A stretch of DNA of 64,000 nt from Hyaloraphidium curvatum SAG 235-1 (GCA_025558095.1 JAIVFI010000022.1:1-64000), one strand, 5' to 3'; counted from the first letter of the stretch, positions 20,457 to 28,363 are shown. The notes: generated by a model not told the origin, from the letters alone. Numbers and translations: made by a program.

Positions 20457-21347
20457 CTACTCTTCCATCAAGTCGTGCCGCGCATCCCCTCGGACATCCT
20501 CGGGCTGGTCCTGCTCGCGTCCGGTTTCCTCTTCGGGTTGTACTATGGCCTCCTGCAGCTGCTGCTCCCGGTGCTCTCGCATCTCGGCAATCTCAGGAAA
20601 TGCGAAGCGAGTGACGGCGCCTCCTACTCTCCCCGCAGCGTGCAAAAGGGTGCTCCCGACAGCTGCCGACGCTTCTTGGATGGTGGCCGACGGCTGTCTC
20701 CACAGTTTCTCAGCAACTCGCGCCATTGACTCCATCAAGCCAGAGGACTGCGGCGCCTTAGCGGCGAACTTGAGCGCGAGGCCGTACGCCTGTGCGTTCT
20801 TGAGCTGCGTGACCACGTCCGCCGCCGACCGCGGGTCCGACAGGTCGCGCCCGTGAAGCAACCACACGACCTCCCGCGCGTCGGGGTCGAGATTCTCCGG
20901 ATGGGTGCGAGCGAGAGCCCTCTGGTTGAGCAGGATGGGTGCGGCGACGTTGCGGACCGGCGCCAGCTCGGCATTGCTTCCGACAGACGCGCCAGCAGCG
21001 CCCAGCTCCGTCTCGACACTGCCCTCGGCGGGGTCTTGCTCGTCGCCGCCACCGCCGTCGGCCTCCGCTTCGACAGGAAGGGGTTGGAGCTGGTGCTTGC
21101 CCAACAAGAGCGGGCCGACGACGAGCCGCTTGGCGGCTTCCTCCTCGACCGACTCCTCGTTCCGCCCGCCTTTGACACGCGTCGGAGGAAAGAAGGTGAC
21201 GCTGGCGGCCGATGGCCCGGCCTGCGCGGTGCCGCTTTGGAGATTGCGCGCGACGGGGCCAGAATCCGGCGCTGCAGCCGTTCTTTTGGGCCCGGGAGTG
21301 AGCCCAGTGTTTCCTTCGTGGGCCCTTTTGCCCTCGCCGCCCTCCAT
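20457..21347 (-). CDS. Orphan protein (~296 aa), divergent from the retroelement and outside the putative TSD
   Basis: ORF from ATG 21347 (MEGGEGKR...) with a helical-looking core (EVVWLLHGRDL..LKNAQAYGLALKF) and an acidic tail. Confidence 0.5.
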   Translation of the reverse strand: MEGGEGKRAHEGNTGLTPGPKRTAAAPDSGPVARNLQSGTAQAGPSAASVTFFPPTRVKGGRNEESVEEEAAKRLVVGPLLLGKHQLQPLPVEAEADGGGGDEQDPAEGSVETELGAAGASVGSNAELAPVRNVAAPILLNQRALARTHPENLDPDAREVVWLLHGRDLSDPRSAADVVTQLKNAQAYGLALKFAAKAPQSSGLMESMARVAEKLWRQPSATIQEASAAVGSTLLHAAGRVGGAVTRFAFPEIAEMREHREQQLQEAIVQPEEETGREQDQPEDVRGDARHDLMEE

Positions 21348-21395
21348 CGATGCGGATGAGCGACGGGAAGGGGCACCGGCTCTGAGATGCCGCTT

Positions 21396-21406
21396 GCCAC
21401 GTACCC
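21396..21406 (+). repeat. Putative target-site duplication, left (GCCACGTACCC)
   Basis: Identical 11-mer at 28353-28363; ends 17 nt before the ORF1 ATG. Confidence 0.65.
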
Positions 21407-21423
21407 TTACATGGTACGAGAGT

Positions 21424-23562
21424 ATGGACCCCCCTGACACAGGGCAGGGGCCCAATGATGCGGCCGCTCCCGTGGTCCTGCCTGATGGCAAGGTCTCCCC
21501 TGCGCTCGCCGCGGCCTCCTCGGAGGCGCTTGCGAATCCCGTCCACTCTTCCCACGCTCCCGGCGTCGCTGCCTCTCCTCGCCTCCCTGGCGCGGCAGAG
21601 GAGCCCGCGCCGGCCCCCGCTGGTGCTACGGCTCAGCTGACAGGTTCTAAGGAGGACGCTGCTGAATCGACCACTGAAATCCGCCCCGCGTCCGCCAACG
21701 GCGGCGCCCGGGAGGAGCCGGCTCAGCACAATCGTCTCCCGAAAGCAACCGCCCCCGCCACGCGCCTGGGGTCTCGCTCTTTCGCCGCAGCAACGTCGCG
21801 CACCTCGCCCGACCGCCCGATTGTTCGTGTCACGGACGGCGCGATGGCGGAGCATCTGGCTTCTGCCATGCCTTTCTCGGCGCCCACCAACTACGCCAAG
21901 CTCATCGATCGGGTGCAACCGCACGCCAACGGTCGGGGCTACACGCCGGCCTTCATTGGGCCTGTCCCCCACTGCCTCATCGACCTCAACGGTGTGCCAA
22001 AGGACCGACGGCGCGTCGTCGCCGAAGCCGTGGCGAAGGCGACCTTCCCCACCACCGTCTTCACGACCGAGACGCGAGGCTACAACCCGCGTTACTCGCG
22101 ACTGGACCTCTTCTGTGTTGTTGGTGCTGTCGACGGGGCAGACGCTATCAACGCCTTGGTGGAGCAGGGGGTGCTGGAGGTCAAGTTCCCAAACGGACCG
22201 ACGCGTCGGCTGCGCATCCACCCTGTCTTCAAGGACACGCACGCCGAGCTCAAGATCGGGCCCATGATCGTCCCTGGTTCGGTGCACGAGTGCCCGGACT
22301 GGTGGGCCCGCCTCTACGCGACTTTCCAGAACCACTATGGGGCCCCTTGCCAAGTCATTGAAGCGGCTCCCATCTCGGGCACCGACAGCAACGCCTTCTG
22401 GCGGGTCACTTTCGACGTCTCGCAGTGCGGGGTTGATGCCTTCTTTGACCGCGCAGCACGCATTGGCCCACCCTCGTACTGCTTCCTTGACTCGTGGGGG
22501 ACGCTCCTCCAGCACAAGCTCCTTCGCCCAGCTGTCCGCTATGACAGTAGCAACGGACAGTGCGGCCACTGCAAGCGCACAGGCGGCCACGTCGGTGACG
22601 ATGCCACGTGCACCAACTGTGCTTACTGCCCAGACGGTCTCAACCGCATGAATCCCGGCGCCTTTGCCAGCCCGCAAGCACGCCGTGCACACGAGGCGGA
22701 CTGCATTCACAACCCGGCCAACGTACGGCTCTCTCCCCCAACGGTGGAGCCCGCCACGACCCCACGGCTGCCCCCCCTGAGGGAAGAGGTCGTTCCTCCG
22801 CATCTGGCTTCCCCCACCGCCCCTGCGGCCGACGAGTGGCTTACAGCTGGGCCGTCCGGCAAGCGCGCAGGCTCTGCGCCCCCAGCTCTTGCCCAGCCAG
22901 TGGCCAAGGCGTCCCACAACCGGTTTTCGGCACTTGGTGGTGGTAGTGCCGGTGCTTCGGTCGATTGGGGGGAGTCTGACGCCGCCGAAAAGATGGATTT
23001 CCATGGTCTTCCCATTTTGGAGCCGGCTGACAAGGATGGGGACGAGGACATGGGTGGTGCCGACCAGCTGGCCGCTGAGAACGCCATCAGCAGTGCTGCA
23101 CAGCAGGTTGCAGCCAATACCGCGCTGGAGGATCTGGAGCTTGCTGCTCCCGCAATGGAGGGCACGGAATCTGCGATGGAGGAGGATGCCACCGGCTCTG
23201 AGGCCTCGGGTGGAAACGACGCTGCCTCCGAAGCCTCTGCTGAGGGCGATGGTTCGAACTCGGAGGCACCAAGCGAAGACATGCACACGGCCGATGAGGC
23301 CGCTGGGGCATCCGCGGTTGGTGATCCTACGATGGCCCCAGGCCCCAAGCACGCAGGCAAGGGCCGTCCCGTGGAGGATGTGGCAGGGACAAACCCGGAC
23401 AAGGTTGCCAAGCCGTATCAGCAAATCGACGTCAAATCCGCCAAAGCGGAACAGAAGGCCAAGGCGGCCGCTCGCAAGCCCGGCTCCCCCCAGGCCAAGG
23501 CCACCTCCATGTCAACCGGATCCCTGCTGCCGGCTCCTGGCTCACCGTCCTTGAATGCCTAA
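21424..23562 (+). CDS. Retrotransposon ORF1 (gag-like, RRM-like region + CCHC knuckle), 712 aa
   Basis: VRYDSSNGQCGHCKRTGGHVGDDATC knuckle, further C/H ligands (CAYC..HEADC), NRFSAL motif often seen in LINE ORF1 proteins, disordered termini. Confidence 0.75.
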   Translation: MDPPDTGQGPNDAAAPVVLPDGKVSPALAAASSEALANPVHSSHAPGVAASPRLPGAAEEPAPAPAGATAQLTGSKEDAAESTTEIRPASANGGAREEPAQHNRLPKATAPATRLGSRSFAAATSRTSPDRPIVRVTDGAMAEHLASAMPFSAPTNYAKLIDRVQPHANGRGYTPAFIGPVPHCLIDLNGVPKDRRRVVAEAVAKATFPTTVFTTETRGYNPRYSRLDLFCVVGAVDGADAINALVEQGVLEVKFPNGPTRRLRIHPVFKDTHAELKIGPMIVPGSVHECPDWWARLYATFQNHYGAPCQVIEAAPISGTDSNAFWRVTFDVSQCGVDAFFDRAARIGPPSYCFLDSWGTLLQHKLLRPAVRYDSSNGQCGHCKRTGGHVGDDATCTNCAYCPDGLNRMNPGAFASPQARRAHEADCIHNPANVRLSPPTVEPATTPRLPPLREEVVPPHLASPTAPAADEWLTAGPSGKRAGSAPPALAQPVAKASHNRFSALGGGSAGASVDWGESDAAEKMDFHGLPILEPADKDGDEDMGGADQLAAENAISSAAQQVAANTALEDLELAAPAMEGTESAMEEDATGSEASGGNDAASEASAEGDGSNSEAPSEDMHTADEAAGASAVGDPTMAPGPKHAGKGRPVEDVAGTNPDKVAKPYQQIDVKSAKAEQKAKAAARKPGSPQAKATSMSTGSLLPAPGSPSLNA

Positions 23563-24406
23563 AACACCACCAAGCAAGTGGCAACGCCGAGTAGTGGGCT
23601 GCTCTTCTCGGCGCCGAGCTCGTCCGGATACCTCCCGGGCGCGGTCAGCCCCTCCATCTTTTGCTGTTTTGCAGTCTTCACCGGTACGCCAACTACCACT
23701 ATCTACAACGTCTCACCGAGTTCCGAGGCCGTTCGCGGCAGCAGGGGAGACTTCCGACATTGACCCCGCGTCCCCCGGGGCCCCTCGGCCAAATGCCGTG
23801 CCTAGCTTGGCCGAGGGTCACACTCTGCCCACGCCGCCCCGCGGCTCCTCCCGCTTGCCGGCACCAGCGGGGGGGAAAGGGGCGGCACGCTCGGAAGTAT
23901 CTCCCTCCTCGTCATCGCCGATCTTGATCGCTGATGCCCCGGCTTCGGCCGCTTCCATGCTCCCGGCGCACCCAGGCCATCCTCCGTGGGAAACCCCAGC
24001 TGCAACCGCCGTGCCGAGCTTGCAGCTGCCGCCTGCGCCGCCCCGCACAACCCCCGGCACGCCGCCGGCACCAACGGCCGGGGGGGGGCAGAGCTCCTCG
24101 GAAGTATCCACTCCGACGCGCACCTTGCCTCCTTGGTATGCTCACACGGAGCCCGGTTCGCCGGCGCACCTCGAATGGCCAGGTTCCGAGCTCCTCGATG
24201 ACGGCGGCCGTGATGCTATCGGTGACGCGTGGTCGGCGCTTGCGGCCTGGCACAGGGCGGGGGGCGACCTGACCGAGTCCCAGGAGGTTTGGATGCGGAC
24301 ACATGCGCTCGACGATTGGGATATCTCGTCGGACAAAGCACCGTCCGCGGTAGCTGATCCTGGCGGTGGGACACCGGCATCGCCGCCGCCACCGTATTCG
24401 CCATGA
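23555..24406 (+). CDS. Retrotransposon ORF2, orphan Pro/Ser-rich protein with Trp-rich C-terminal segment, 283 aa
   Basis: Fills the ORF1-ORF3 gap exactly, with an ATGCCTAA overlap on ORF1 and an ATGA overlap on ORF3. Confidence 0.55.
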   Translation: MPKTPPSKWQRRVVGCSSRRRARPDTSRARSAPPSFAVLQSSPVRQLPLSTTSHRVPRPFAAAGETSDIDPASPGAPRPNAVPSLAEGHTLPTPPRGSSRLPAPAGGKGAARSEVSPSSSSPILIADAPASAASMLPAHPGHPPWETPAATAVPSLQLPPAPPRTTPGTPPAPTAGGGQSSSEVSTPTRTLPPWYAHTEPGSPAHLEWPGSELLDDGGRDAIGDAWSALAAWHRAGGDLTESQEVWMRTHALDDWDISSDKAPSAVADPGGGTPASPPPPYSP

Positions 24407-27400
24407 GCCGCACGCCGCTCCTGCCTTACAGCTGCCACCGCTGCGCGGCAGCTTTCGCCAACATCGGAGCTCTATCTCTTCATCACCAATCTTGCATCGA
24501 CGGCGATGTGCCGATGGCGGAGGCGCCTGCTGAACCCGGCCTCCATGCGTGCCCGGTTGATGGTTGCCGCTTCCAGCCAACTCCAAACAAAAACAAACGG
24601 GACGGTCATCTTCGGGTCACACGGAGCCCGGAGCACTGGTTGGCGATGCAGCGCCTGTCTGCCGATGCGTTGCGCGCCATGGGGCTCGCGCGGTGCGGGG
24701 GTTGCCGGCGTCCCTACGCCGCAAACGCCTCTGGTGCCGGTGTTTCTGGACAGCACACCTCGTGCAACCCGGACGCAGCTAACCCGCCACTCGGCGTCTC
24801 TTTAGCTTCGCTTCCACCCGATCTCGTCGAGTTCCTCGACCGCGTGCGTGCCGAGCGGGCGGCTGCCACGGGACGCGCGGAGGGACCGGCGTCACCGGCG
24901 GCATCGTCGGCATCTCCCCGTGCTTCGCCACCCGCGCCCGCGCTGATGGCGGCCCTTGCGGCCGCCCGGGTTGCGGCCGACGCCCCGCAGGACGTCCAGG
25001 CGCAACGGGCGGCGCTGGCGGCGGCGGCGGCGGCGGCGCGTGCCGCCCCGGACGGCGGTGATCCCCCAGGCGGCGACGGCGCGCCGGGCGGCAACGCCGC
25101 GGCTGGCGGGCACGGCAACGGCGGTGATCCGGGCGACCCAGGCGACGGTGGTCCACCCGGGGGTCCCGGGCCTGATCCGCCGCCGGGCGGGGGCGCGGGG
25201 GCGCCGCCGCCGGAGCCGCTGAAGCAGCGCTACCGGACCACCACCTGGAGCACGCTCGCCTTCCGGGCCAGCGAGTCTTTCCAACGGGCCTACGAGGACC
25301 CGGCGGCACCGGAAACCGACCTGCACCGCACTCTCACCGCCTACCTTGCGTTTGGCGGCTACGTCATGTCGGGGGACTACATGTACGAGCAGAACTACTT
25401 CGCCGCCCGTCAGGTCAACCGGGGCGCGCGGCGGGACGGGCTGCGGCCGCTCAACTACCAGCTCTTCAAGGCCATCGTGCTTGCCGCCTTGAAGGGCGCT
25501 CCTGGTGCTGCGTCCGCGGCGCTCTCGGGGGAGGCCGTTCCGGCTGGCTTCACGCCCACGCTGCAGGCGGAACTGGAGGAGCTGTACCCGGGGCCGCGGG
25601 AGGGAGAGCCGCTGTGTCGGCTGTCTCTGCCCCCCAACGCGCCCGCGCCCTGCCCTGCCTACACGGACGCGGCTTTCCTGGAGGACATCTGGGCCCGGTT
25701 GCGCCGGAAGAAGGACGGCGTGGGGGCCGGCATGTCGGGTTTCAGCATGGCCAAACTTTTCATCGTGCACAACTGCGAGAACGACGCGACGCGACGGAAG
25801 CTCCGCCCGCTGGCGGCCATGGTGCACGGCGTGTGCACTGGCCGACTCGACACCCCCATGCTCCGGCCGCTCCTCACGGATCAAATCCTCGTCCCTCTGC
25901 TCAAGCCGGAGGGGGGGCTCCGGCCGATTGGCATTATGGAGGGCATCACGCGGCTCGCGGGCTCGTACCTGGCCGTGCGGCACAAGGCTCTTCTGAGGAA
26001 GCTCCAACAGCAGGAGGACCTGGGTCACGGGGTGGACGGGGGCGCGGAGGCGACCGCCCACGCGGTGAACGCGTGGCTGGCGGCCTTCCCCGACCACGTC
26101 GTCATGAAGGTCGACTCTAGGAACGCCTTCAATACGCTGCGCCGCCTCTTCGCGCGCGAGGTGGTCCGCCAGGTGCCTCAGCTTATCCCGTACTACAACC
26201 TCGTTTACTCGCGCCCTTCCCACGCCTACTTCCGCGACCGGCGCTCGGCGGAGCTCCTTTTCCGGATCACCATGTACGAGGGCAACATCCAGGGCGACCC
26301 GCTGTCGTCTGCCATCTTCTCCTGCGCCATGAGCCGCATGCTGCGGCCCATCCGCTCTGGGCACCCCGACTGCCTCATCCTTGGGTACCTCGACGACCTC
26401 ACCGTGGTCGGGCCGCTGGACTCGGTCATGGCCGTCCTGGGAGAGGTGCGTGACGGCCTTGCTTCCCTCGGCATGACCCACCGCCCGGACAAGAGCTACC
26501 TGCTTTCGCTCTCGACGAACCCGGCCGTGCTGGAGCGGGTGCGCGCGGCCGGTGCGGCCCACAACATCCGCGTCGCTGGCTTCCCGCCTCACGAGGCCGA
26601 CCCCGAGGTGCATGCCACGGCGTCGGCCCCGGGCTCGCCTGACTTCGCTCGCTCGTGCGGCCTCAAGGTGGTAGGTGCCCCGGTCGGCACCCCTGCCTAT
26701 GTGGAGTCGTTCCTCGCGGCCAAGATCGACTCCATTGCCGCTCTTCTCGATGAAATCGAGCGCGCTGCGCTCGGCTACGCCATGCCGGCCGACATCCCCT
26801 CCCTCCAGGGCCTGTACTCCCTCCTCCGTCTCTGTGTGACCCAGCTCTTCTCGTTTTGGCTCCGCATTCTCCCCCCCTCGGTTACCCAACCCTTTGCTCG
26901 ACGTCTTGACAACGCGCTTTTCACCACCTTCTTGCGCTTGCTGGGAGATCGGGCCGAGGATCTGGATCCGCTGTCGGTGGAGGGTCGGACTGTGCGGGAG
27001 CAGGTATTCTTGGGTCTGCACTACTCGGGGATGGGGCTTCTGTCATCGGAGAAGGTGGCCTCGGCGGCTTACCTGTCTTCACTCAACCTCACGGCGGGCC
27101 CCTTGGACGCCATGCTTGGTCTTCGAACCTCGGCCCGGGGTGTGGGCGTGGAGCACGTGCGGGAACTGGTTCCCGTCATCGAGGCCCTCCGCCCCGCCTT
27201 TGAGCGTGTCGAGGATGACACGGCCGCAGCGTACGCCGAGGCTGCGCGTGCTGGGCAACCGGTGGGCGCCGCGCCCGCCCGCCGTACGCTCCCTGCGGAC
27301 GCCAGTTTCTTCGCCCAGCCGGTTTGGCACGGCCTGCAGAGCGACCTTACGCGTCTCGAGGACCAGCGCCGCCTCGCGGCTCTGATTGCCTTGCAACCCA

Positions 27401-28314
27401 CCACTTCCGCTGGTCTGGAGCGCCGCAAGCGGCTCGTCCAGGCGCAGGACGGCCTGTCGGCTTTCCTGACTGCCTCTCCCGCGCTGCTTGCCAACCACAT
27501 TCGCAACAACTTTTTCCGCTTACTTGTACGCTTCCGGCTTTGCCTCCCGCTCCTGCACGAGGCCGACTACCCTGGTCTTTCCTTGCCCTGCCGGCGGGGC
27601 TGCAAGCGATCGGCCATGTCGCTGACGGGGGAGCACGCGTTCTCGGGCTGCTATGGCCGGGATCTCTTCAGTCCTGGTCACGACGACATTTGCGCGGCCA
27701 TCCGCGCGGCGCTTCGCTCCATCCCGCTCCTCCGCGTGCACCCCATGCCGCCAAACCTCCTTGCGCATGGCTACGAGACTGTCACCCCGCCCACGCCTGC
27801 GGATGCTGGCCGCCTTGGCGACGTTCTCATCACGCACCGCGAAACCCGGAAACGGTGGTTGCTCGAGATCAAGACCCTCACCTCTATGGCCCATTTGCAC
27901 ACGGGCCTGGTCTTCTCGGTCCCGGGCCACGCAGTCGAACGGCGGGTCGAGGCCGCCAGGAAGGACTACTCCCGTTTCGTCTTCAACGCCAACTTCTACC
28001 CTCTGATCGTGCTTGCTTTTGATTCGTACAGCGCTGTCTCTGCCACTTTCTCGCGCTTCTCCTCGGAGATGGGGCGCATCCAGTATCCCGGGATCGTCGG
28101 CCGCGATGGGCAGCCCGTGGACCTCGATGGCCTTTACTCTCGTTTTGTGCGGCGCTTCCGCGAACGGATCGCGGTGGCCTGGGCTCTTGGCGTCGCGGCC
28201 CAACTCCAACACTGGCTTCAGCTGTGCACCGAAGCCGCCGCTGTCAACGCTCCGGCCCCCGCGCCGGTCGCATTTGGTTTGAATGTAGATGAGGAGCTGA
28301 TTCTTGGGGCGTAG
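24403..28314 (+). CDS. Retrotransposon ORF3: N-terminal zinc fingers, RT (YLDD), CCHC, restriction-like endonuclease, 1303 aa
   Basis: CHRC..HHQSC, CPVDGC..HLR, LKPEGGLRPIGI, DSRNAFN, QGDPLS, YLDD (26386-26397), CRRGC..HAFSGC, HDDI, RLGDVLI..LLEIKT. Confidence 0.95.
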   Translation: MSRTPLLPYSCHRCAAAFANIGALSLHHQSCIDGDVPMAEAPAEPGLHACPVDGCRFQPTPNKNKRDGHLRVTRSPEHWLAMQRLSADALRAMGLARCGGCRRPYAANASGAGVSGQHTSCNPDAANPPLGVSLASLPPDLVEFLDRVRAERAAATGRAEGPASPAASSASPRASPPAPALMAALAAARVAADAPQDVQAQRAALAAAAAAARAAPDGGDPPGGDGAPGGNAAAGGHGNGGDPGDPGDGGPPGGPGPDPPPGGGAGAPPPEPLKQRYRTTTWSTLAFRASESFQRAYEDPAAPETDLHRTLTAYLAFGGYVMSGDYMYEQNYFAARQVNRGARRDGLRPLNYQLFKAIVLAALKGAPGAASAALSGEAVPAGFTPTLQAELEELYPGPREGEPLCRLSLPPNAPAPCPAYTDAAFLEDIWARLRRKKDGVGAGMSGFSMAKLFIVHNCENDATRRKLRPLAAMVHGVCTGRLDTPMLRPLLTDQILVPLLKPEGGLRPIGIMEGITRLAGSYLAVRHKALLRKLQQQEDLGHGVDGGAEATAHAVNAWLAAFPDHVVMKVDSRNAFNTLRRLFAREVVRQVPQLIPYYNLVYSRPSHAYFRDRRSAELLFRITMYEGNIQGDPLSSAIFSCAMSRMLRPIRSGHPDCLILGYLDDLTVVGPLDSVMAVLGEVRDGLASLGMTHRPDKSYLLSLSTNPAVLERVRAAGAAHNIRVAGFPPHEADPEVHATASAPGSPDFARSCGLKVVGAPVGTPAYVESFLAAKIDSIAALLDEIERAALGYAMPADIPSLQGLYSLLRLCVTQLFSFWLRILPPSVTQPFARRLDNALFTTFLRLLGDRAEDLDPLSVEGRTVREQVFLGLHYSGMGLLSSEKVASAAYLSSLNLTAGPLDAMLGLRTSARGVGVEHVRELVPVIEALRPAFERVEDDTAAAYAEAARAGQPVGAAPARRTLPADASFFAQPVWHGLQSDLTRLEDQRRLAALIALQPTTSAGLERRKRLVQAQDGLSAFLTASPALLANHIRNNFFRLLVRFRLCLPLLHEADYPGLSLPCRRGCKRSAMSLTGEHAFSGCYGRDLFSPGHDDICAAIRAALRSIPLLRVHPMPPNLLAHGYETVTPPTPADAGRLGDVLITHRETRKRWLLEIKTLTSMAHLHTGLVFSVPGHAVERRVEAARKDYSRFVFNANFYPLIVLAFDSYSAVSATFSRFSSEMGRIQYPGIVGRDGQPVDLDGLYSRFVRRFRERIAVAWALGVAAQLQHWLQLCTEAAAVNAPAPAPVAFGLNVDEELILGA

Positions 28315-28352
28315 GGGGATTGCTAAGTGTACGGTGGGATTGCTAGCTCCTC

Positions 28353-28363
28353 GCCACGTACCC
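28353..28363 (+). repeat. Putative target-site duplication, right (GCCACGTACCC)
   Basis: Begins 38 nt after the ORF3 stop; matches 21396-21406. Confidence 0.65.

Follow-up and report, generated by a model that had tools for sequence, protein, structure and literature searches.

A young R2-like LINE family of Hyaloraphidium curvatum with three overlapping open reading frames, the second of which may serve as a translational relay

A full-length element with three open reading frames

The stretch of DNA considered here, called the window, is the initial 64 kb (64,000 nucleotides) of contig 22 of Hyaloraphidium curvatum SAG 235-1 (GCA_025558095.1 JAIVFI010000022.1:1-64000), a genome of 31.9 Mb with about 68% GC. 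Positions 21407-28352 of the window correspond to one full-length retrotransposon lacking long terminal repeats (non-LTR), and its limits follow from the 11-bp target-site duplication that brackets it, GCCACGTACCC, found at 21396-21406 on the 5' side and as the same 11-mer at 28353-28363 on the 3' side (both on the + strand). The element harbors three open reading frames (ORFs), all on the + strand: ORF1 (21424-23562, 712 aa), an orphan with a gag-like character; ORF2 (23555-24406, 283 codons), a second orphan rich in proline, alanine, and serine; and ORF3 (24403-28314, 1303 aa), which carries the enzymatic domains. ORF1 and ORF3 share one frame, ORF2 lies in the +1 frame and fills the gap between them exactly. 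The ORF1 stop overlaps the ORF2 start in ATGCCTAA (23555-23562, +), and the ORF2 stop overlaps the ORF3 start in ATGA (24403-24406, +). The three intact ORFs and their two overlaps had been reported by a first-pass annotation made from the sequence alone, and each was found on direct reading. As detailed below, the element is an intact copy of a young, recently active family of long interspersed nuclear elements (LINEs) of the restriction-like endonuclease (RLE) type, with an R2-like enzyme, in which ORF2 may act as a translated relay between ORF1 and ORF3. As a whole, it is absent from public annotation: the H. curvatum gene models KAI9023127.1, KAI9008734.1, and KAI9002193.1 cover only the final 232-310 aa of ORF3 and are labelled 'hypothetical protein'.

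The extremities of the element are short. Position 21407 is the start of the element, and ORF1 begins later, at 21424. The first 10 nt, TTACATGGTA (21407-21416, +), are extra nucleotides unique to the window copy; such extra sequence between the duplication and the leader is common, differs among the other copies, and ranges from 0 to about 40 nt. They are followed by a 7-nt leader, CGAGAGT (21417-21423, +), common to copies of subfamily A, one of the two subfamilies described below (it was seen in L001, L002, L014, L027, and, partially, L012). Subfamily B copies have other short leaders, and the conserved leader ahead of the ORF1 AUG measures only 0-13 nt. At the other end, a 3' untranslated region of 38 nt (28315-28352, +) follows ORF3. 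The other copies terminate in ...CTCCTC followed by ATTAC(AC)n, a tail that is absent from the window copy alone. The TTACATGGTA sequence at the 5' junction of the window copy resembles this missing tail, and the two peculiarities together may be the product of a template switch.

Searches for known RNA families returned none in the whole window at Rfam gathering thresholds and, within the element, no meaningful match at E values up to 5. Neither an HDV-like or hammerhead ribozyme nor any other 5' ribozyme was detected by the Rfam search of the element and the folding of its 5' end, and folding of the two element ends and of both ORF junctions revealed no stability beyond that of shuffled sequences (z -0.7 to +1.3).

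ORF3 encodes an R2-like enzyme

The ORF3 product is predicted to comprise a zinc-finger (ZnF)-like N-terminus, a reverse transcriptase (RT), a linker, a CCHC motif, and an RLE. The RT core (25903-26556, +; aa 501-718) was the only Pfam match of ORF3 (RVT_1, E 7e-10), and it includes QGDPLS (26290-26307) and YLDD (26386-26397, +; aa 662-665). The CCHC motif (27589-27651, +; aa 1063-1083) lies between the RT/linker and the endonuclease, whose core consists of residues D1140, E1155, K1187, and D1207 (27817-28032, +). In an alignment of 43 relatives, the C, C, H, and C positions are nearly invariant and are followed by conserved D, D/E, K..Y, and E..G columns, in which these four ORF3 residues fall. 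Upstream of the RT, three ZnF-like Cys/His motifs (aa 11-31, 50-78, and 98-121; 24433-24765, +) were recognized by regular-expression patterns only, without Pfam support; a pattern search also revealed C2H2-like motifs at the corresponding N-terminal place in the relatives.

Structural comparison points in the same direction. An AlphaFold (AF2) model of ORF3 aa 431-1303, built from the alignment of relatives, reached a predicted local distance difference test score (pLDDT) of 83.7 and a predicted template modelling score (pTM) of 0.85, and displays a beta-beta-alpha-beta core in the endonuclease. R2 proteins were the top matches of this model both with Foldseek (E 1e-16 to 1e-14) and with VIA-align (Z 22.1-22.7 over 659-690 aligned residues), and residues 1-853 of the model align to R2Bm 398-1107, a span that covers RT and endonuclease and reaches the C-terminus of R2Bm. 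The fold scores Z 21-23 against R2, L1, and group II RTs; the family profile matches R2Tg with an E value of 2.8e-41 versus 1e-25 for L1 ORF2p. No apurinic/apyrimidinic endonuclease (APE) domain was found: Exo_endo_phos had no match in ORF1-3 (Pfam, E up to 0.1) and none in the ORF3 relatives. The ratio of nonsynonymous to synonymous polymorphism (pN/pS) is about 0.2 in ORF3, and the GC content at its three codon positions is 0.70/0.48/0.81.

Motifs, conserved columns, and model thus confirm ORF3 as encoding a genuine ZnF-like/RT(YLDD)/CCHC/RLE protein, the ZnF-like part being predicted from patterns alone, and the RT, CCHC, D/E/K columns, and R2-topped structure and profile matches bear out the initial identification of the element as an RLE-type non-LTR retrotransposon. 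Membership of the R2 clade itself was rejected. A single-sequence PDB search did not retrieve R2 at E values up to 1, and the insertions are dispersed rather than located in ribosomal DNA (rDNA), which together place the family among RLE LINEs outside the R2 clade proper. An exhaustive HMMER search collected 5,110 distant ORF3 relatives, the best with 30% identity and nearly all of them unnamed metagenomic proteins, with one from the alga Closterium.

A young and recently active family

A whole-genome search identified at least 20 copies with 99-100% identity, many of them 5'-truncated, including at least 8 full-length copies besides many partial ones. ORF1 is intact at 19 places, ORF2 is open in all 21 copies in which it is complete, and ORF3 has an open frame of about 1,300 codons at a minimum of 15 places; all three ORFs are intact in 7 of the 8 full-length copies fetched. 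The 20 aligned copies are almost devoid of indels and fall into two subfamilies, A and B, separated by about 48 shared sites. The copies are scattered over many contigs, and their flanks are unrelated. Many copies are both 5'-truncated and bracketed by duplications, a combination characteristic of target-primed reverse transcription. The recent activity suggested at first reading is therefore well founded in the near-identity of the copies, the scarcity of indels, and the mostly intact ORFs. No older subfamilies were found in the genome: a copy on contig C13 that seemed to be 81% identical proved to be 98.6% identical DNA with indels, and apparent matches at 83-84% were due to alignment overhang.

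Insertion at a short target word

When the 5' flanks of 24 copies were aligned, a target rule emerged that the first-pass annotation had not noticed, namely (Y)TCTGAGA plus 8 nt. The word CT[G/T]AGA lies upstream of 20 of the 24 5' junctions and is exact in 18 of them. Ahead of it, position -1 is a T in 15/20 and position -2 a C or T in 17/20. In the window copy, CTGAGA, preceded by CT, is located in host DNA at 21382-21387 (+), 8 nt upstream of the first-strand nick. The word is found on the sense strand of the element every time, indicating a single orientation of insertion. In every copy where a duplication can be defined, this duplication starts exactly 8 nt after the word, whereas its other edge varies; the duplications of the other copies measure 6-14 bp. 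Under target-primed reverse transcription, the edge that is fixed represents the first (bottom-strand) nick and the variable one, 6-14 bp further, the second-strand cut.

These junctions show the family to be site-specific and indicate that it spreads through target-primed reverse transcription. The ORF3 protein (ORF3p) would recognize (Y)TCTGAGA, presumably via its N-terminal zinc-finger-like motifs, and nick the bottom strand exactly 8 nt downstream of the word. Synthesis of the cDNA would then be primed on an RNA with the 3' end ...CTCCTC-ATTAC(AC)n, and the second strand would be cut 6-14 bp onward, yielding duplications of variable length, with frequent 5' truncation and extra 5' nucleotides.

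ORF1, a probable nucleic-acid-binding protein

No homologue of ORF1 was detected via Pfam, a PDB sequence search, a word search of 5.8 billion proteins, or Atlas features, and neither ORF1 nor ORF2 gave a match when tblastn was run against the contigs of the relatives. Nevertheless, its pN/pS of 0.3-0.4 between subfamilies and the periodicity in its core (codon-position GC 0.69/0.57/0.72) show it to be under purifying selection. A single-sequence AF2 model had a pLDDT of 42, yet the order of its secondary structures is clear: two predicted beta-alpha-beta-beta-alpha(-beta) units, similar to RNA recognition motifs (RRMs) or ferredoxin-like folds, occupy aa 183-347 (21970-22464, +; low confidence). 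Downstream of them, a pattern search located a Cys/His knuckle with the non-canonical spacing CX2CX5HX6C (aa 380-396; 22561-22611, +), which has no Pfam zf-CCHC match, and an NRFSAL motif can be read at aa 499-504 (22918-22935, +). The Atlas leads were ZCCHC3-like and zf-CCHC clusters (0.85-0.90).

An L1-style arrangement of RRM and CCHC had been proposed for this ORF. The knuckle and the NRFSAL string do exist, but the arrangement itself is not established at a pLDDT of 42 and with a non-canonical knuckle. Likewise, Foldseek matched the model only to tandem RRM, Cas6, or ACT folds, that is to folds of the RRM/ferredoxin type, but with TM scores of 0.15-0.24. RRM-like units followed by a knuckle are thus weakly indicated, and the ORF1 protein (ORF1p) is probably a gag-like, nucleic-acid-binding protein.

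ORF2 and its two junctions

Several features distinguish ORF2 from an arbitrary reading frame. Its ATG lies 5 nt before the ORF1 stop and is immediately preceded by an in-frame stop (TGA, 23552-23554), and its own stop is part of the ATGA of ORF3. The overlap ATGCCTAA is identical in 17/17 copies covering the junction, and ATGA in 20/20, in both subfamilies, so that the conservation of the overlaps across copies was borne out. Over the gap of about 843-845 nt, the ORF2 frame contains no stop, as against 4 and 8 in the other two frames. In dinucleotide shuffles, such openness arises by chance with a P of about 0.011 for the given frame and 0.031 for any frame.

Three simple accounts of this region were discarded. 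A frameshift artefact restricted to the window copy is ruled out, since every copy has the same structure, and no fusion of ORF2 to ORF1 or ORF3, a concern raised with the first-pass annotation, was seen among the aligned or intact copies. ORF2 does not appear to be the frameshifted remnant of a conserved N-terminus: an all-frame blastx against 180 relatives came back empty. Finally, the frame shared by ORF1 and ORF3 has 7 further stops in the gap and is open for 17 codons just upstream of the ORF3 ATG; these 7 in-frame stops rule out simple read-through from ORF1 to ORF3.

We propose, with a probability of roughly one half, that ORF2 is a translated relay that carries ribosomes to ORF3 by termination-reinitiation. 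One mRNA of about 6.9 kb, with a leader of 0-13 nt, would serve the three ORFs. ORF1 would be translated from the first AUG; some of the ribosomes ending ORF1 would restart at the AUG located 5 nt upstream of its stop and translate ORF2; and ribosomes ending ORF2 would restart at AUGA on ORF3. As both restarts would be inefficient, ORF3p is proposed to be much scarcer than ORF1p. Selection would keep ORF2 open and both overlaps in place rather than preserve the ORF2 peptide sequence. A relay is proposed instead of a conserved third protein because the frame is exactly bridging, invariant, and open, yet unconstrained. UAAUG stop-start coupling is described for the LINE SART1 (Kojima 2005, via PMC3894237) and for the fungal hypovirus CHV1 (PMC2699510).

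The same region can be read as an untranslated, 843-nt non-coding spacer that is open by chance, with ORF3 being expressed via internal ribosome entry within it, or else from an RNA that is separate or has been processed, as proposed for most LINEs having an intergenic region. The codon positions of ORF2 have a flat GC content (0.68/0.71/0.65), without periodicity, whereas those of ORF3 differ strongly (0.70/0.48/0.81), and its composition (18% P, 14% A, 13% S) is that encoded by GC-rich random sequence. In ORF2, pN/pS was 0.5-0.8 on 6-8 differences, indistinguishable from the alternative frames. When substitutions were counted against the majority base of each column, the synonymous to nonsynonymous ratio of subfamily-fixed differences was 17:9 in ORF3, 7:8 in ORF1, and 1:4 in ORF2, the selection tests on ORF2 resting on 5-26 substitutions. 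ORF2 remains an orphan, as initially described: no homologue or recognizable feature was found via Pfam, a PDB sequence search, or the 5.8-billion-protein word search, and its Atlas recognition score is low. Moreover, stop-free stretches of at least 283 codons account for 27% of the window's six-frame space, and the relatives have plain spacers. Chance alone would nevertheless have to account for the openness of the whole gap (P 0.011-0.031) and for the placement of the ATG after an own-frame stop and 5 nt from the ORF1 stop, together with the ATGA end, all invariant in both subfamilies; furthermore, neither Rfam nor the junction folds disclosed a structured RNA suggestive of an internal ribosome entry site. 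On balance, a non-coding spacer is judged rather unlikely, although it has to be taken seriously.

The openness and the overlaps would also be accounted for if ORF2 encoded a real third protein. Translated through stop-start coupling as in the relay, it would be a disordered accessory factor needed for retrotransposition, such as an adaptor having a C-terminal PPPY and a Trp/acid-rich segment. Private substitutions provide an argument for it: read in the ORF2 frame, 12 are synonymous and 9 nonsynonymous (expected synonymous fraction 0.317; P 0.014 before correction for nine tests), whereas the other two frames of the region give 3:18 and 6:15, making the synonymous excess specific to the ORF2 frame. 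The C-terminal third of ORF2 is also less repetitive and has PPPY near its end (24386-24397). Yet this P value fails the correction for nine tests, ORF3, which is certainly coding, has no synonymous excess among its private changes, and a PPxY motif is expected by chance at 18% proline. In addition, the differences fixed between the lineages mostly change amino acids in ORF2, and no homologue turned up among billions of proteins, in keeping with the low Atlas score. The functional 'extra protein' postulated by the first-pass annotation is thus not upheld by periodicity, pN/pS, or homology, and we consider it improbable.

Production of the three ORFs as fusion proteins, by recoding or by splicing, appears more improbable still. 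In the recoding route, a +1 shift at GCC-UAA-A would bring the ribosome into the ORF2 frame, and a -1 shift within the 17 open codons before the ORF3 ATG would bring it back; skipping the U of the ORF1 stop indeed moves the ribosome into the ORF2 frame, and frame 0 is open over these 17 codons. Only 5 nt are available for the +1 event, however, and the ORF3 ATG is preceded neither by a slippery heptamer nor by a stable stimulatory structure. In the splicing route, an intron would remove the stops and fuse ORF1 and ORF3, which are in the same frame and 843 nt (3 x 281) apart, into the single giant ORF that is normal for RLE LINEs (PMC5678591). A roughly 800-nt intron lacking good GT/AG consensus would be out of the ordinary, and a spliced RNA would drop the segment from new copies, whereas all copies retain it.

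Returning to the relay, several points weigh against it. The copies are so young that their intact ORFs say little by themselves, and a P of 0.01-0.03 for openness is not overwhelming at 68% GC, where chance ORFs abound. In eukaryotes, a ribosome that has translated a long ORF, here one of 712 or 283 codons, normally reinitiates with very low efficiency and requires helper elements to do so. Neither ORF junction showed a significantly stable RNA structure (z +0.4 and +1.3), and the only candidate helper is a lone UGGGA, the core of the calicivirus-type reinitiation motif, at 24367-24371, which precedes the ORF3 AUG by 31 nt and could be there by chance (about 0.07 per 70 nt); no motif of this type was found ahead of the ORF2 AUG. 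The private synonymous excess of 12:9 fits poorly with a pure relay and hints at peptide constraint or at a mutational artefact. Lastly, in the closest relatives the RT ORF follows the upstream ORF after only 20-158 nt, and no ORF bridges the two.

Comparison with known systems

RLE LINEs comprise the CRE, R2, R4, NeSL, and Hero clades (PMC4640811) and have been described as single-ORF elements (PMC5678591). This is a usual rather than a strict feature, and the present family departs from it, with three ORFs in all full-length copies. Among the elements of the CRE clade, SLACS and CZAR of trypanosomatids are RLE-type LINEs with a separate upstream ORF, hence two ORFs, and are inserted in spliced-leader genes. 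Going by description only, the family resembles them in having a separate upstream ORF and differs in target and in ORF number.

Comparison with R2 (8GH6, 9NL2, 9NL3, 9DOU) reveals likenesses at several levels. Both have the RT-linker-CCHC-RLE superdomain (Z 22-23 over about 660-690 residues) and N-terminal Cys/His motifs of DNA-binding type, those of the family being predicted from patterns, with a sequence-specific first-strand nick, and both show variable 5' junctions and 5' truncation, without LTRs or poly(A). By contrast, the sequences are only 12-16% identical, R2 targets the 28S rDNA whereas the family targets an 8-bp word scattered over the genome, and R2 has one ORF where the family has three and no detected 5' ribozyme.

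The predicted layout of ORF1 resembles that of Type I ORF1p, in which one or more RRMs lie directly upstream of a CCHC knuckle and which is known from APE LINEs, in the I, Jockey, R1, Tad1, plant L1, and L2 clades (PMC4120745). The two predicted beta-alpha-beta-beta-alpha-beta units of ORF1, followed by a Cys/His knuckle, account for this likeness. The differences are the absence of sequence or Pfam similarity, the spacing of the knuckle (CX2CX5HX6C versus CX2CX4HX4C), the low confidence of the model, and a partner enzyme that is of the RLE and not of the APE type. As for the junctions, SART1, an APE-type element of the R1 clade, and CHV1 likewise have successive ORFs of a single RNA joined through a stop codon that overlaps the next start codon. 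Both are bicistronic and their coupling was shown experimentally, whereas the family has two successive overlaps (AUGCCUAA and AUGA), read from the sequence, and an RLE enzyme.

The closest proteins are metagenomic and algal RT-CCHC-RLE proteins (P0007, P0008, P0009, P0025, and others, one of them from a Closterium sp.), with 26-31% identity from the RT to the RLE. Several of them also have an upstream orphan ORF, but these upstream ORFs bear no relation to ORF1 or ORF2, and plain spacers of 20-158 nt, none with a bridging ORF, lie between them and the RT ORF. Among relatives from environmental eukaryotes (L035/L036, on ENA metagenome contigs, L021, and L023), orphan ORFs of 569, 714, and at least 277 aa were noted just upstream of the RT ORF. 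The upstream orphan ORFs of distant relatives suggest that RLE LINEs with several ORFs form a wide group that has been poorly described. The combination of three ORFs with an RLE, reported at first reading, is present in all full-length copies; an ORF upstream of the RLE ORF is not unique. No paper on Hyaloraphidium transposons was found in a literature search.

By every enzyme-level test, the family is an RLE LINE, but it has three ORFs, a short-word target, and no match above about 30% identity in the databases covered. A wider interpretation, which we put forward tentatively and regard as somewhat doubtful, is that three proteins are made from one almost leaderless mRNA by two stop-start reinitiations, and that the association of a motif-reading, R2-like enzyme with a gag-like RRM-plus-knuckle ORF1 places the family, as an undescribed RLE clade, midway between RLE LINEs with one ORF and APE LINEs with two.

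The early-branching RLE LINEs, such as R2, are the model for target-primed reverse transcription and are under development for RNA-templated gene insertion. In this respect, the family offers a new compact specificity, consisting of a short word and a fixed 8-nt offset to the nick. Its gene layout departs from the textbook scheme of one ORF for RLE and two ORFs for APE elements, and bears both on the acquisition of ORF1 by LINEs and on ways of holding the enzyme far below the RNA-binding protein. If true, the double stop-start coupling would be a rare case of eukaryotic tricistronic translation in a cellular genome, and ORF2 as a mere relay would be a clear case of selection acting on an open frame and not on a protein.

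Further observations on the window and on individual copies

Two long antisense ORFs lie opposite ORF1 and ORF3, of 888 aa (20758-23424, - strand) and 709 aa (24892-27021, - strand), respectively. They were dismissed as genes and attributed to the by-product of GC3-rich coding sequence and GC composition.

Head-to-tail tandem copies are located at C1:231869-245722 and C2:~530500-539500 (L026, L028, L031). In these arrays, the 3' end and its ATTAC(AC)n are followed by the ATG of the next copy after 18-24 nt. Such tandems would be expected if the retained CTGAGA word were targeted again. Three copies, L011 (C43:~367333), L012 (C2:~171038), and L016 (C35:~437950), are interrupted at different internal points by one and the same foreign sequence, starting with TGCGAAGGTACAGGACGTCTGACATTCGG, probably one end of a different mobile element, inserted repeatedly into the family. 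On C11, three identical 3' fragments of ORF3 (512273-513424, 523351-524502, and 534430-535581) are spaced by 11,078-11,079 bp; it seems that an 11-kb host tandem repeat amplified a truncated copy. Finally, the full-length copies L007 (C1:~521983) and L028 (C1:231869), about 290 kb apart, have a common 5' flank (…CACTCTGAGAGCCCTTGG/GACGCCC), reflecting either a target inside a repeated host sequence or the duplication of a segment.

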